A stretch of DNA of 64,000 nucleotides from Dicyema japonicum (lineage: Eukaryota > Animalia > Dicyemida), in NCBI GenBank assembly GCA_011109175.1, contig RDEW01000012.1, positions 1,088,129 through 1,152,128 on the forward strand. The letters are read 5' to 3'. Of the stretch, positions 22,862 to 45,180 are shown one piece after another. Position 1 is the stretch's first letter, and every line of letters begins with the position of its first letter. Under the pieces are notes generated by a model that had not been told where the DNA came from, made no database searches, and was given only the letters and a program-made list of their open reading frames with translations. A program made the position numbers and the translations under genes.

Positions 22862-24823
22862 TTTATTTAATTAATTAACCCGAAAAGGGAACACCAAGAA
22901 AGAAGGAGTAATCCAACTAATTAAGTGATCCCGGTACGCCTCAACAGGATCGAGAGGTTTTTCCTGTGTTCCTCCAGAGTACCCACGGCTTTCCTGAATA
23001 AACGACGATCATCTTTCATTAGAGTTTGAAGAGGAGTGGGGTTTTTCCCCAAATTTCGTGTATTTGAAGCCTTCAGCCTTGAATGGAAGAAACGACTTGT
23101 TTCTTGGCCACACAGACAGATGAAGCCGGAACCATTATTTTTGATTGCGGCGAGGTCAAGCATTGGAGGAAAAGATCGGGGGGTAGATTTGTTTGACGTG
23201 CTAGTTTTCCAATTAGTGTATTGATCTTGAGTGAATTTGATATCGAAGCTCCATAGGCCCATGTGGCACAGGCGTACTCAATCGTCGGTTTTAGGAGTTG
23301 ATTGAACACGACGAGGGCGCATTCCTGTGAAGGTTTGGACTTCAAGAGCGGTTTGATATATTAAGTTTCCTGAGACCCTTTGTCATAACGTTCTTCACAT
23401 GTTGAGAAAATGACATCAAAGGGTCAAATGTCACTCCCAGGATAGTTGGACGAGTCTGTAGTGGTAAGGAGTCTCCAAAATGTTCAAATCAAGTGTATGT
23501 TTTTCTTTTCTGTCCGTGGTGAAGATTGTATATGTTGATTTGTCCCTGGATACGGAGAGACGATTCAACTTCAACCAGGCTCCCAGGTCGTCAATATGTG
23601 ACTGAAGCTCTGATTTTGCTGTACCCACGTATTTGTTCCTGCTAGCGATGATTAGGTCGTCAGCATAAGTGAGAAGCATTGAATCTGGTCCTCCAGGGCA
23701 GGGTAAATCGTTGAGGAACAAGTTGAATAATGCCGGAGAGAGGGGCGATCCTTGAGGGACGCCATTTGGTAGGAGACGGGACCTCGATCTTGCGTGGCCT
23801 ATACAGACACGTCCTCTTCTTCCGGAGAGAAAATTGGCTATCCATCTTTTCAAATCCGTCTGAATGGTGGTGTCAAAAACCTTCTTCGTGAGTAATATTC
23901 TCGAGACAGAATCGAACGCCTTCTGGATATCCAGGGAAACCATTATTGTCCGTAGATGGCGTTTCGGTACGTTGAACCCTTCTGATATAAATTGAGACAG
24001 TGAAGTCAAATGTGTCGTAGTTGAACGCTCACATTTGAAACCATGTTGAAAGTGGCAGTCGGGCAAATGGGGTTTAATTTTCCAGAGTACGAGTTTCTCC
24101 ATTAGGCGCGATAATGCGCACGTTAATGAAATTGGACGGTAGGAAGAAGGTAAGGTTTTCGGTTTTCCTGGTTTAAGGATCGGTATTATAAGTGAGTTTT
24201 TCCATTTGCATGGGATGACGTTCATGTTAGAAGACAAATTAAAAATTGACGTAATTGAATTGATTGCAGCATTACCAAGGTGTTTTAACAAAATTCCCGG
24301 ATGCCGTCAGGTCCACACGTAAAAGATCTCTTCATCGATCTTATAGCCTGTGTGACCTCGGCATGCGTAAACAGATTGATCCATGAAGTTGGTTTAGGCA
24401 CTAAATTCCGAAAGTGACAAGAATGGGATTTCGAGAAGTCCTTGTGGCTTATGGATGCGTAATATTTCATTAGGTTGTTAGCTTGCACAGTATTTGGAGC
24501 AGAAAAAGATTCTGATTCATCTGATAAGTTTAGCTTGATTCGACGAATAGTTTTCCATAAAAGACTCGTGGATTTCATATGTCCAATAGATGATAATAGG
24601 CGCTTCCACGCCCTATCTTTCTTTTCTCTGATGAGCTTTGTAATTCTCTGATTTAAGCATTTTATATTTTGCAAATCAGAAGAGGTTTGCAGATGATTCA
24701 TCTTCAGGGAGTTTCTTTGTTTGATGAGGAGACGAGTCTCCGAGTCCAGAGTAGGCTTGTAGGATTTATAAACTGCACGTGGTACAAACAACTTTTCAGC
24801 TTGAAGGATTACATGGTTTACAT
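22862..24823 (-). mobile_element. Ingi/Vingi-like LINE, RT to 3' end (left arm of palindrome)
   Basis: ORFs 24285-24836, 23431-24291 (YRPISL, QHGF, SLDIQKAFDSV, GVPQGSPLSP, YADD), 23073-23345 (LKPTIEYACATW), 22921-23262 ending RTGIT*; 3' stem-loop and AT-rich tail; no RNase H seen. Confidence 0.92.
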
Positions 24824-26858
24824 CAGGGGTTCTCAACCTTTTTTTACTCGTCGACCCCTTGACTAATTTTTTCGACCCCCCTAATATTTAATCGACCCCT
24901 TAAAACTTTTTTATTTAGAACAGACAATTCTAAGTAAAATTAGTTAACTGTCTAAACTGAATTCATTGTTAATAATCAATTCAAACAAAAAAAGTATATA
25001 CTCGATGTTAAGTTAATATCTTAGCATAAATTTATAATAAAAAAATTAAATACCAATGGGATTCCTGTGACTGATGTTTTATTATCAAAGATTCGATATC
25101 TGGCTCTATATGTGTTATTTTTAAACGAAGATCTCCTCTAAGGGACACTTCCAATCTGTTTCGTTATTATTTTTGATTCTATGTAGAATGCTGAATCCGC
25201 ATTCAACACAGTATGATGTAGGAAAATAGAGTAGCAATTGTGCTATTTCTGTCCACAATTTTGGATAACTCTCCTTCACTTTCATAATTTTGCCAAAAAA
25301 TAACAGGTGATTGTGAATCATTATAATATAGTTTTTAATTCTGGATTGAATTTTAACATAATTAATTCCTCTTTAATAATTTCTTTTTGTTCTTCTGGCT
25401 TTGACAAATACGGATTAATCATCCAAGATGGAATTTCTAATTCAAGAATATCTTGGAATCGAAGAATCAAATCTTTTTCTATGCTTAATAAATGTTGCAA
25501 AAAGTTTGTTAATATCTTCATCATCAAATGTTGATTAATTGAGTAGAATTCAGGAATGTTATAAATTTCTTTATTTCCAAGTTATATTTATATAACTTAA
25601 TTTTTTCGATAAACATTTGAATAATTCTTTACAATCTATTAACGTCACATACTTTCCCTGAAGTTCTAATAAAACTTCATTAAATTTTCCAAATAGACAA
25701 TTTTTTTCTTTTCCGATACAATTAAATCTGCTAAAGTTTTATCACCCAGAAGTAAGAAAATTTTACGATTTTGTCAAATAATATTGAAAATCGTTCTAAT
25801 GCATTTTCCTTTGATAACCATCGTACCTATAAAATAAAATTGGAAACTATAACCTCAGTGTGAAGCACAAAACGAACATATGTTTCTTTAGCCTCATAGC
25901 AAAATTTTCTAAAAAGACGGTCATACTTGCTGTTTGCTTTAATTTTGTTATGGTTTTAATAACTATATTTAACGTTTCATGTAGAATTGGCGAAAGAGCT
26001 TTTGAAACAAAATGTTGTGTATGTAGAACGCAATGTATATGAATCACATTTGGACATATTTTTTTCAAATATGCCTCAAATCCTTTATATTTTTCAACCA
26101 TAGACATTGCACCATCTGTGGCACAAAAGACCAAATTTTCATATGGAATCTTCTTGTCATCCAAAAATAATTTGACTACGGAAAAAATAGAAAAATCCAG
26201 TCATATCAGTTTCCAAATATTTGACGGAATAATAAAGCTTCTGTAGGAATAGCATGATCGTCAAAATATCTTAAAGGGTAAGCTTCTAATAAGATTAACC
26301 TGACATATCCCATTAGAATTTATTGGTTGTCACATGTATGACTTTCGTCAATTTGAAGCGAAAAAAAATAGTATTTTTTGTTTCTTTCAATACTATTTTG
26401 TAAAAACTGTCAATCGTTTTTTGTTTACGAAAAGAATCCTTTAATTCTTCAAAATACTCTAATGGTTTATCTTTTTTATCCGAATGTTTTACTCTAAAAT
26501 GATCCAACAATTTGGACGGTTTCATTGCATCATTTGATAACTTGTTACACAGTAAGCAATATGGTCTATTATCAAAAAAAATTTTATAAATCCAAATTCA
26601 AATATTCATTTTTATATTGACGAATTTTTAATGTAGAAGACGACTCATACACAAACAAAAACATGCATGGTAATTTTAAAATTTTAAAGAACAAAGGTTT
26701 ACCACTTTAAAAATAAACTAACTTAATTTAAATTGAAAAAGATTAAATATATTAAATTTATTTTCGACCCCCAAATATTTCATTTTCGACCCCTTACGAT
26801 CGATCTGGATTGATTTTAGACCCCTGGGGGTCGAATCGACCCCAGGTTGAGAACCCTG
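24824..26858 (-). mobile_element. Buster/SPIN-type hAT transposon with TIRs and a decayed, internally deleted transposase
   Basis: TIRs caggggttctcaacct (24824-39) and aggttgagaaccctg (26844-58); subterminal cgacccc repeats; MKPSKLLDHF..KH, ATDGA.SM, IHIHCVLH, LLYFPTSYCVECGFS. Confidence 0.92.
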
Positions 26859-28223
26859 ATCTAAACCATGTAATCCTTCTAGCTGAAAAGTTGTTTGTAC
26901 CACGTGCAGTTTACAAATCCTACAAGCCTAATCTGGACTTGGAGACTCGTCAAACAAAGAAACACCCTGAAGATGAATCATCTGCAAAACCTCTTCTGAT
27001 TTGCAAAATATAAAATCCTTAAATCAGAGAATTACAAAGCTCATCAGAGAAAAGAAAGATAGGGAACCCCCTATTATCATCTATTGGACATATGAAATCC
27101 ACGAGTCTTTTTATGGAAAACTATTCGTCGAATCAAGCTAAACTTATCAGATGAATCAGAATCTTTTTCTGCTCCAAATACTGTGCAAGCTAACAACCTA
27201 ATGAAATATTACTTATCCATAAGCCACAAGGACTTTTCGAAATCCCATTCTAGTCACCTTCGGAATTTAATGCCTGAACCAACTTCGTGGATCAATTTAT
27301 TTACACATGCCGAGGTCACACAGGCTATAAGATCGATGAAGAGATATTATACGTGTGGTCCTGACGGCATTCCGGGAATTTTGCTAAAACACCTTGGTAA
27401 TGTTGCAATCAATTCGATTACGTCAATTTTTTAATTTGTCTTCTAACATGAACGTCATCCCATGCAAATGGAAGAACTCACTTATAATACCCCTCCTAAA
27501 CCAGGAAAACCGAAAACCTTACTTTCTTCCTACCGTCCAATTTCATTAATGTGCACATTAATCGCGACTAATGGAGAAACTTGTACTCTGGAAAATTAAA
27601 CTCCATTTGCCAGACTGCCACTTTCAACATGGTTTCAAACATGAGCGTTCAACTACGACACATTTGACTTCACTGTCTCAATTTATATCAGAAGGGTTCA
27701 ACGTACCGAACCGCCATCTACTGACAATAGTGGTTTCCCTGGATATCCAGAAGGCGTTTGATTCTATCTCGAGAACATTACTCACGAATAAGGTTTTTGA
27801 CACCACCATTCAGACGGATTTGAAAAAATGGATAGCCAATTTTCTCTCCAGAAGAGAGGACGTGTCTGTATAGGCAACGCAAGATCGAGGTCCCGTTTCC
27901 TACCAAATGTCGTCCCTCAAGGATCGCCCCTCTCTCCGGCGTTATTCAACTTATTCCTGAACGATTTACTCTGCCCTGGAGGACCAGATTCAATGCTTCT
28001 TACTTATGCTGACGACCTAATCATTGCTAACAGGAACAAATACGTGGGTACAGCAAAATCAGAGCTTCAGTCACATATTGACGACCTGGGAGGCTGGTTG
28101 AAGTTGAATCGTCTCTCCATATCCAGGGATAAATCAACGTATACAATCTTTACCACGGACAGAAAAGAAAAACATACACTGGATTCGAACACTTATGGAG
28201 ACTCCTTACCACTACAGATTCGT
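26859..28223 (+). mobile_element. Inverted duplicate of the same LINE segment (right arm), truncated at 28223
   Basis: Reverse complement of 23450-24823 at roughly 94-95% identity (about 18 differences in a 330-nt block checked by eye). Confidence 0.92.
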
Positions 28224-29207
28224 AAAAACTTACCACTTTCGAGAATTGTATCACATTTAACTCACAGATAGAATCATCCGAGTATGTTCTGAACACCCAG
28301 ATGGGATTAGTCATAATGATTTCGAAGGTGTTGTTGGTCAAGACAAACTCACCGACTTTGTATTTGTTATAAACCAGCTCACCTCCGAAGTAGTCATTTA
28401 TTCTATTTTAGGAATTATTGATATCTCAATGACTGGGGGATCTATCCATTACCGACTCAGTAAGAAGGAGGCTCAATCTACATACGAAATCTCCAACACC
28501 GATCAATTGGTCCTAGATATGATCGCCGAAGCACAAGCCACGGGTTGCCTTGTATATAACCAAAGGCTTGACAACACGTGAAATCAAGAATCAGATAAGG
28601 GGTGCCCGCCCACGTGCTGTTCAGCAATCCCTCAAGACCCTAACTGGGAATGGATCCGTGGTTGCCGCGTTTTCGACACAGGTTGCTGGGTTATGCTTAT
28701 AGTAGAAAAGAGAGCGAGTGTACATTCTAAAGGAGCATGAAGTTGAGCAGTCCAATCGGGGGAACATTTTCCGGAATAAAGAGGACGGTAAGGTGAACCA
28801 TCAGTTAGTGGACCTGGTCAAGAAGCTGTGTCTTGAATTTGCTGAGAATAAGTACAAGGAAGTGGTTGTGTTAGTTTGTGACTAAGAATGAGGAAAAAAT
28901 GGCTTCATTTTTCTCCCCCGAGGAGGTGGGACAGTGGATGAGGCAGGAGCACTCAGTGGATCTAACCACGGCTGAGGTTGTGAGGATTCTTGATAATCTA
29001 TTTTACTGTGATATGTTGAGAATTAATGGGGATCCGGGAGAACCCAATCTGAGGTATAGGTTTTTGAAGGAACGCTATAATGTGCGGCCGAGTATATGCC
29101 TTTACTGTGGCTGTGAGGTTGGGTTATTGTTATTGTAGGCGTGTAGGGGATCACTAATGATGCCAGTAAATGCATTCTGCATAAATTTTTTATGTCTTAT
29201 GATGTAA
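28224..29207 (+). CDS. POLR3F: RNA polymerase III subunit RPC6 (C34/RPC39) homolog with micro-introns; start codon not evident
   Basis: Spliced: RIIRVCSEHPDGISHNDF..INQLTSE/GIIDISMTGGSIHYRL..DQLVLDMIAEAQATGLTTREIK..RVYILKE..LCLEFAENK..SPEEV..ILDNLFYCD..CLYCGC, matching the winged-helix repeats and terminal Cys cluster of RPC6. Introns 28248-67, ~28390-411, 28544-65, 28682-705, 28862-86, 29118-38 (last acceptor ambiguous). Confidence 0.85.
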
Positions 29208-44522: not shown

Positions 44523-45180
44523 CAGAGGTTGTCAAACGGTGTGCCGCAAGACAATTTCTAGTGTGCCGCCTGCCAAATACAAATTTGAATAAATTTATAT
44601 ACATTTTTGACTTAATTAATTTAAAAAGATAAACGAATTAAAATAATTACTAAAATTAAAATAATCATTTTTTTATTATACATTAAATGACATTTACATT
44701 GGTTAACCATTATTTATAAATTTTTTAATAACGTGAGCATCAACGTGCTTATGGGTAAATCAGTTCGTCGTTCTTATAAAGATTCTTATTTGTCATTTGG
44801 ATGTATATGCAAAGATAAAAATATTGGCGAAAACTTGATAATCCCTGCTTGTTGTATTATTGCTCGGACTATGTTTGGTCATAAATATGAACAAAAAATA
44901 ATGAAGATACCTTTGTCAGATAAACACTGTTTCTCGTCGGATTTGTGCTGAAATGCGAGTGCCTTTGTTAACCATTCGACCTGATATTGATGATATATGC
45001 AAAAACAATAATAATTAAGAATTCATTTTTTTATTAATAAAAATTTCGGCATTAAATTACCAATTTTTGTACTTAGTTTTACACATCTTAAAAATTAATT
45101 TTTTTATTTTTTTAATGTGTGCCGTGGATTATTTTTTTTACGATTAGTGTGCCGCGAGAATTATTTTTTGAAAAGCTCTG
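44523..45180 (+). mobile_element. Non-autonomous Buster-type hAT deletion derivative with normal direct TSD
   Basis: Ends cagaggttgtcaaac / tttgaaaagctctg; TSD ctataaat (44515-22) / ctatatat (45181-88); gtgtgccg subterminal repeats; relic KDSYLSFG..IGENLIIPA..IARTMFG..KIPLSD. Confidence 0.85.

Follow-up and report, generated by a model that had tools for sequence, protein, structure and literature searches.

A hAT-type element at the pivot of inverted LINE arms in the genome of Dicyema japonicum

Layout of the palindrome and its junctions

We analysed a stretch of 64,000 nucleotides from the draft genome of Dicyema japonicum (contig RDEW01000012.1, positions 1,088,129 to 1,152,128 of the forward strand; hereafter the window, in whose coordinates all positions are given). 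Positions 23450-28223 form a 4.8-kb palindrome in which a hAT transposable element lies between two inverted arms of a long interspersed nuclear element (LINE). By repeat search and gapped alignment, 23450-24839 and 28223-26844 are reverse-complementary with 1308 matches and 66 mismatches (95.2% identity, close to the ~95% read off in the initial annotation; 93.7% by blastn with gaps counted). The alignment contains 11 indels, ten of them in the LINE part (5 nt and 8 nt in one case each, 1 nt in the other eight) and one, of 1 nt, in the terminal repeat of the central element. The inverted repeat is real and far above chance. It is made up of the following parts.

22865-23449, minus strand: LINE 3' part, encoding the C-terminal region of the reverse transcriptase and ending in a tail; continuous with the left arm and without a counterpart on the right
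23450-24823, minus strand: left arm, LINE p to p+1373, antisense on the plus strand; nearly intact
24816-24823: left 8-mer, GTTTACAT; the family state is GTTTAGAT
24824-26858, minus strand: hAT element of 2035 bp with terminal repeats, subterminal repeats, and one broken transposase gene
26859-26866: right 8-mer, ATCTAAAC; equal to the uninterrupted LINE at this site
26859-28223, plus strand: right arm, LINE p to p+1373, sense on the plus strand; heavily decayed
28223-28225: outer right-arm junction, where the LINE joins unique DNA without microhomology

Both arms encode a LINE-type reverse transcriptase of the kind found in elements that lack long terminal repeats. Pfam RVT_1 is recognized in the left arm (E 5e-33) and in the right arm (E 3e-16), and the closest database relatives are LINE reverse transcriptases of at most ~50% identity. 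The left arm carries two frameshifts and no stop codon inside its two long open reading frames (ORFs; 24836-24285 and 24291-23431), and the ORF of the right arm is broken into five pieces by at least eight frame-breaking indels. Whereas the initial annotation drew two arms of ~1370 bp, only the right one has an outer edge: it ends in the middle of the reverse transcriptase at 28223. The left arm is unbounded, as tblastn high-scoring segment pairs (HSPs) of reverse transcriptase homologues cross 23450 into the remaining LINE, down to ~22865.

At the inner junctions, both ends of the hAT element adjoin the identical nucleotide of the LINE with the arms mirrored, as had been claimed: the sequence left of the element ends in ...ATTACATGGTTTACAT, and the reverse complement of its right flank ends in ...ATTACATGGTTTAGAT. 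Visual inspection of the junction revealed no microhomology linking the hAT end to LINE sequence. The 8-mers GTTTACAT and ATCTAAAC agree at seven of eight positions as reverse complements, compared with four of eight as direct repeats, and each is compatible with the target pattern NNNTANNN; the inverted flanks first noticed in the sequence thus hold, bar one base. The direct 8-bp target-site duplication expected of a hAT element is missing from the copy at 24824-26858. These inverted 8-mers reflect the history of this hAT copy and not its family. They are unobtainable by ordinary hAT insertion in any prior arrangement, so that at least one of the two hAT-LINE junctions must have been copied from the other.

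Our read evidence consists of short Logan contigs of sequencing runs that include X1, X2, and X4. One X1 contig fits 24731-24820 and continues with GATGGTCCACTG (that is, ...GGTTTA followed by GATGGTCCACTG), showing that the LINE runs on past the hAT site in other copies. Because this contig passes through the site in an uninterrupted LINE, the 5' part of the LINE, earlier described as absent on both sides, has truly been lost from each.

Assignment of the central element to the hAT superfamily is supported by homology of its predicted products, which we detected by exhaustive HMMER search and subsequent Pfam analysis of the matched proteins; Pfam run directly on the hAT ORF pieces gave no significant match. 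The transposase gene is split into many pieces that are colinear with one transposase of ~590 residues: an N-terminal piece corresponds to residues 30-106 (E 8e-20), a middle piece to residues 221-319 (E 2.6e-21, 884 matches), and a C-terminal piece to the hAT dimerisation region at 527-560 (E 3e-5). The homologue P0266 matches Pfam Dimer_Tnp_hAT with 30.4 bits (cut-off 21.4). An Atlas feature search, which provides a language-model lead only, returned FAM200/ZBED5/ZBED8/DUF4371 clusters (score 0.95) and fits a Buster-type hAT. The terminal repeats CAGGGGTTCTCAACC (24824-24838) and CAGGGTTCTCAACC (26845-26858) agree at 14 of 15 positions and differ in length by one base, whereas the two subterminal regions, rich in TCGACCCC-type repeats, are unlike each other. 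Two different ends and one colinear transposase gene show this to be a single whole element, not a folded half.

Further X1 contigs place the hAT ends (24824 and 26855) next to unrelated sequence, ...ATATAGAC on the left and CTTTAAAA on the right, and the element thus moves independently of the LINE arms. The NNNTANNN pattern fits these two read-derived flanks as well as both 8-mers, and a loose preference for it is all that the flanks in reads have in common. Other variants of the element are visible in the reads: an X4 contig joins 24851 to 26834 with 16 other letters in between, corresponding to an internally deleted miniature derivative elsewhere in the genome, and X2 contains several other internal-deletion joints. 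Relative to the read majority, the window copy has few substitutions but numerous 1-nt length differences (25286, 25332, 25505, 25627, 25947, and 26789 among them). Errors in the long-read consensus of the draft, rather than mutations, may account for some of its frameshifts.

At the outer borders, we found no LINE remnant to the right of 28223 (local alignment score 16, with a shuffle maximum of 16), no duplication between the outer flanks ATAGTTGG and AAAAACTT, and no direct repeat of at least 10 nt shared by the LINE 3' flank and the right flank, which is single-copy by read depth. An unbounded left arm without outer duplication or LINE remnant excludes a composite mobile unit and disfavours twin priming. 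The initial annotation had considered a composite or foldback unit in which the LINE arms serve as extended terminal repeats, and long inverted arms around a transposase-bearing centre do have this appearance. The outer target duplication expected of such a unit is missing, however, the left arm has no outer end and simply continues as LINE, and the hAT ends occur with unrelated flanks in reads; we attach almost no credence to such a unit. Twin priming would produce a head-to-head LINE pair in one retrotransposition, with a hAT element later entering the centre. A left copy with a complete 3' end and a right copy starting internally is the geometry expected of this process, but the two segments overlap fully (p to p+1373) instead of representing adjacent LINE parts, and the flanking duplication is lacking. 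In addition, a hAT element entering a p/p junction should be flanked by a direct 8-bp duplication, and none is present; the arms also appear to differ in age (see below). We consider twin priming highly improbable.

Decay of the two arms

To polarise the differences between the arms, the right arm was projected onto the left-arm frame and aligned with 40 reverse transcriptase homologues, the conserved residue being taken as ancestral. The arms differ at 26 of 275 residues, and the conserved state is kept by the left arm at 16 positions and by the right arm at 2 (binomial p = 0.0013). Polarised by reading frame, the ten LINE-part indels divide into eight that arose in the right arm and two that arose in the left; residues and indels combined give p = 2e-4. 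A left deletion near 23476 is backed by the reads, which carry the extra base in 69% of the depth. In tblastn searches with reverse transcriptase homologues, the left arm returns one in-frame HSP of 278 amino acids with 49% identity and the right arm three broken HSPs with 32-42% identity. Changes from G/C in the left arm to A/T in the right number 37, compared with 17 in the reverse direction. The ratio of nonsynonymous to synonymous substitution rates (dN/dS) between the arms is 0.43-0.54, and part of their difference thus arose under selection in active elements. No disabling mutation is common to both arms.

Disagreements with the read majority number 6 over the 1824 sites of the left LINE (23000-24823) and 2-4 over the 2035 sites of the hAT element, placing each within about 0.1-0.3% of its family majority. 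Copying of one arm from the other after arrival of the hAT element would therefore predict an identity of ~99%, not the observed 95%. An identity of 95%, with nearly all change in the right arm, suggests that a young hAT element lies between LINE sequences of different age, one an old fragment and the other a young copy. Judged from these sequence comparisons, the arms are of unequal age and are not twins; the equally old copies that a one-step inverted duplication should leave are not what we find. The fossil of an inverted-duplication event proposed in the initial annotation consequently survives in part: the geometry supports a scar of aberrant repair at the hAT ends, but unequal decay speaks against twin arms and comes close to the outcome that the annotation itself had set against its proposal, namely that the arms are different LINE copies.

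A simple inverted duplication, in which the LINE 3' flank was reverse-copied across the hAT element by fold-back or sister-chromatid transposition and both arms have decayed since, has the merit of economy. One step gives the mirror junctions, the flipped 8-mer, and the arbitrary internal end of the right arm joined without homology, and a second LINE copy is unnecessary. Twins should decay equally, however, whereas we observe ratios of 16:2 for residues and 8:2 for indels, and dN/dS should be about 1. The lack of a disabling mutation common to the arms is a further difficulty, as is the distance of the hAT element and the left LINE from their family majorities, which is so much smaller than the 4.8% between the arms. 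The excess of ~50 changes in the right arm over a handful private to the left is indicated rather than proven. To rescue this scenario, the whole left LINE would have to be overwritten later by a young copy, and we regard it as improbable.

Divergence is not uniform along the arms: 9 mismatches fall in the inner 365 bp and 57 in 1009 bp (p = 0.015). Within this inner region of lower divergence (2.5% compared with 5.6%), 142 bp of the arms (24459-24600) are free of mismatches, possibly reflecting arm-to-arm conversion or a trace of the founding event. Read depth over the right arm is 2-13 times below that over the left in mirror bins, but is not an independent measure because consensus-type contigs are placed on the better-fitting left arm.

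Proposed repair at the hAT ends and competing origins

The mirror junctions, the flipped 8-mer, the arbitrary internal cut of one arm, and the homology-free outer junction anchor the rearrangement on the hAT ends, and the unequal ages of the arms call for a second LINE copy beyond plain fold-back. We tentatively favour a one-off rearrangement scar, in which fold-back or template-switch repair was primed at the hAT terminal repeats and a second LINE copy supplied one arm; we hold this to be a possible rather than a probable history. As expected of fold-back, the terminal repeats bound the spacer exactly, and the join 28223/28224 is without homology.

We infer a break, snap-back priming, and participation of a second LINE copy, in the following order. 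An ordinary hAT insertion into one LINE copy at ATCTAAAC would have been followed by a later break at or beside one hAT end and by resection. The exposed 3' end, carrying one terminal repeat, could then snap back on the other terminal repeat 2 kb away; after trimming of the non-matching tail, it would prime outward synthesis across the other junction. This snap-back step alone would yield a second hAT-LINE junction at the same nucleotide with the 8-mer flipped. The new LINE-sense strand would next anneal or template-switch to a second, non-allelic copy of the LINE family, for which a neighbouring inverted copy, a nascent LINE complementary DNA, or an ectopic copy are candidates. Removal of non-homologous flaps, including the original LINE 5' half, would complete the process, trimming setting the inner end of the second arm at the same nucleotide. 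In the predicted product, a young hAT element is the centre of mirror symmetry, with a young LINE copy to its left and an old, decayed LINE fragment to its right.

The individual steps have precedents. In yeast, single-stranded DNA is documented to fold back at inverted repeats that are diverged and far apart, with removal of the tails (PMC10164571), and resected ends self-anneal and prime local inverted duplications at LINE-1-induced breaks (bioRxiv 10.1101/2024.12.14.628481). The hAT elements Ac/Ds and Tam3 generate flanking inverted duplications (bioRxiv 10.1101/2020.01.07.897926; PMC3744419).

Several points weigh against snap-back repair with a second LINE copy. No more than 14-15 bp can pair between the terminal repeats. 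Either another member of the LINE family must have been near enough to take part or an ectopic template must have been used, and blastn finds no further copy of this family inside the 64-kb window. There is no clear partner-copied tract beside the hAT element, and the right arm has four indels in the inner 365 bp. If the right arm is the old resident, its 3' truncation needs a further event. Right-arm-specific contigs reach only 0.25-0.5 of single-copy depth, so that the contigs reveal no extant source copy sharing these variants. Finally, none of the contigs listed spans a junction, and there is no structure-spanning read.

Two LINE copies of different age, which is how the arms behave, would also be expected if two hAT elements had independently inserted at the same site of two LINE copies in opposite orientation, the loci then being merged within the hAT sequence by ectopic recombination or chimeric assembly. 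Both families are abundant enough for this, the LINE and the hAT element each reaching ~100-500 times the single-copy word depth, and the genome is a Platanus+Falcon hybrid draft (PMC6736024). Yet the same nucleotide would have been struck twice among hundreds of TA sites, and the read flanks ATATAGAC and CTTTAAAA are only loosely NNNTANNN-like, giving no sign of a site-specific hot spot. The 3' truncation of the right arm would again require another event. We consider a double insertion quite unlikely.

The draft nature of the sequence raises the related question of an assembly artefact at one or more junctions, notably at the join 28223/28224 or in the placement of the right arm. The assembly was mate-pair scaffolded and gap-closed, heterozygosity has been estimated at 1.24% and repeats at 49% of the genome, and the transcriptome RNA came from pooled animals (PMC6736024). 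A 155-nt contig of single-copy depth (988 in X2, 60.9 in X4) fits 28225-28317 and then departs from the window with 63 non-fitting letters that start exactly at the outer edge of the arm, as an artefact would predict. Read contigs also differ from the window by ~3.5% at 28646-28900 (8/200 and 10/279). An assembler, on the other hand, has no reason to break at both transposon termini and at one LINE nucleotide, and breakpoints placed exactly at the transposon termini argue against an artefact at the inner junctions. The 15-bp terminal repeats are, moreover, shorter than the k-mers and overlaps used.

Right-arm-specific contigs exist in X4 at depths of 24-49, near the depth of 26 found for an exact window-type contig, the total at the locus being ~100. 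Because the right arm is thus represented at about the depth of the window-type haplotype, the departing 155-nt contig is more simply a second allele. The simplest reading is that two deeply diverged alleles or lineages are present in the pool and that the rarer of them (about a quarter of the depth) carries the mirrored structure. We therefore judge an artefact to be unlikely, although it deserves to be taken seriously. Elsewhere in the window, two isolated single N characters (43148 and 50152) interrupt an otherwise gap-free 64 kb, as is typical of a gap-closed or merged draft assembly.

An Ac/Ds-type alternative transposition product is not compatible with the presence of only one element and the lack of an 8-bp duplication at the outer borders. 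Four further schemes were rejected, since they predict identical hAT ends or colinear arms, or do not explain the use of the same nucleotide. If a hairpin loop had been deleted between two inverted LINE copies already in place, the 8-mer should have been lost from the wrong side. Integration of the hAT element into the stem of a hairpin should leave two hAT copies in inverted orientation, and a read-through RNA of hAT and LINE that was retrotransposed should show one and the same hAT end at either side. For error-prone synthesis or strand-biased hypermutation of the right arm, the change (4.5%, mixed spectrum) is too much and too even.

Related systems and neighbouring features

Rearrangements caused by cut-and-paste transposons are known mainly through genetic screens in maize, snapdragon, and flies. 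Natural fossils in which both junctions are exact to the nucleotide are to our knowledge rare, and we know of none described for dicyemids. The palindrome adds a further natural case to an already known class of events and has one unexplained feature. Because it retains the element at its pivot, the inverted 8-mer, and the end-joined junction at its outer border, the repair route can be read from the sequence.

In maize Ac/Ds sister-chromatid transposition with re-replication, and in Antirrhinum Tam3, a hAT element likewise lies at the pivot of a neighbouring inverted repeat, with one junction exact at the element end and the other end-joined at an arbitrary position (bioRxiv 10.1101/2020.01.07.897926; PMC3744419 and its references 45-47). 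The maize events differ in that they use the ends of two nearby elements, leave an excision footprint at the centre of the duplication, and produce twin arms of 0.3-3.2 Mb; here, one whole element forms the centre, and the arms are 1.4 kb long and apparently of unequal age. Snap-back at a resected double-strand break is similar in that single-stranded DNA anneals at an inverted repeat that is short or diverged, the tails are cut back, synthesis is primed, and the spacer is kept as the centre (PMC10164571; bioRxiv 10.1101/2024.12.14.628481). The arms of such products copy each other, however, whereas the Dicyema arms appear to be two different family copies, so that an extra template switch or annealing step is needed. 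Mu killer and Ac killer are also natural inverted duplications from aberrant transposon events, and these loci are transcribable into hairpin RNA. The repeated sequence in them is the DNA transposon itself, unlike the LINE repeated here.

The unequal age of the arms was unexpected. If real, it would mean that a break at a transposon end was healed via another member of a dispersed repeat family, and it cautions that arm divergence is unsafe for dating palindromes of this kind. A more speculative extension, which we think improbable, is that hAT ends in this genome are recurrent palindrome seeds, acting via snap-back priming and recruitment of a non-allelic copy of the host repeat. Inverted repeats arising in this way would combine members of a family that differ in age, and they could be sources of hairpin RNA against the LINE.

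The window contains a second element with hAT features, which the initial annotation had used as an internal control for the flanking 8-mers.

44523-45180: miniature hAT-like element of 658 bp; terminal repeats agree at 12 of 15 positions; direct 8-bp duplication CTATAAAT / CTATATAT (7/8)

Its direct duplication is confirmed, but blastn finds no similarity to the 2-kb hAT element, and it belongs to a different, unrelated hAT-like family.

The mirrored structure also lies ~200 bp upstream of a host gene, and a LINE hairpin RNA may be formed if the palindrome is transcribed. The right flank carries this gene from ~28,400 onward on the plus strand, ~200 bp from the right arm, with tiny introns: positions 28400-29140 contain a run of short plus-strand ORFs apparently separated by them. 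One ORF piece of 50 amino acids in this run is weakly matched in Pfam to Rpc34, a subunit of RNA polymerase III (E 0.097).

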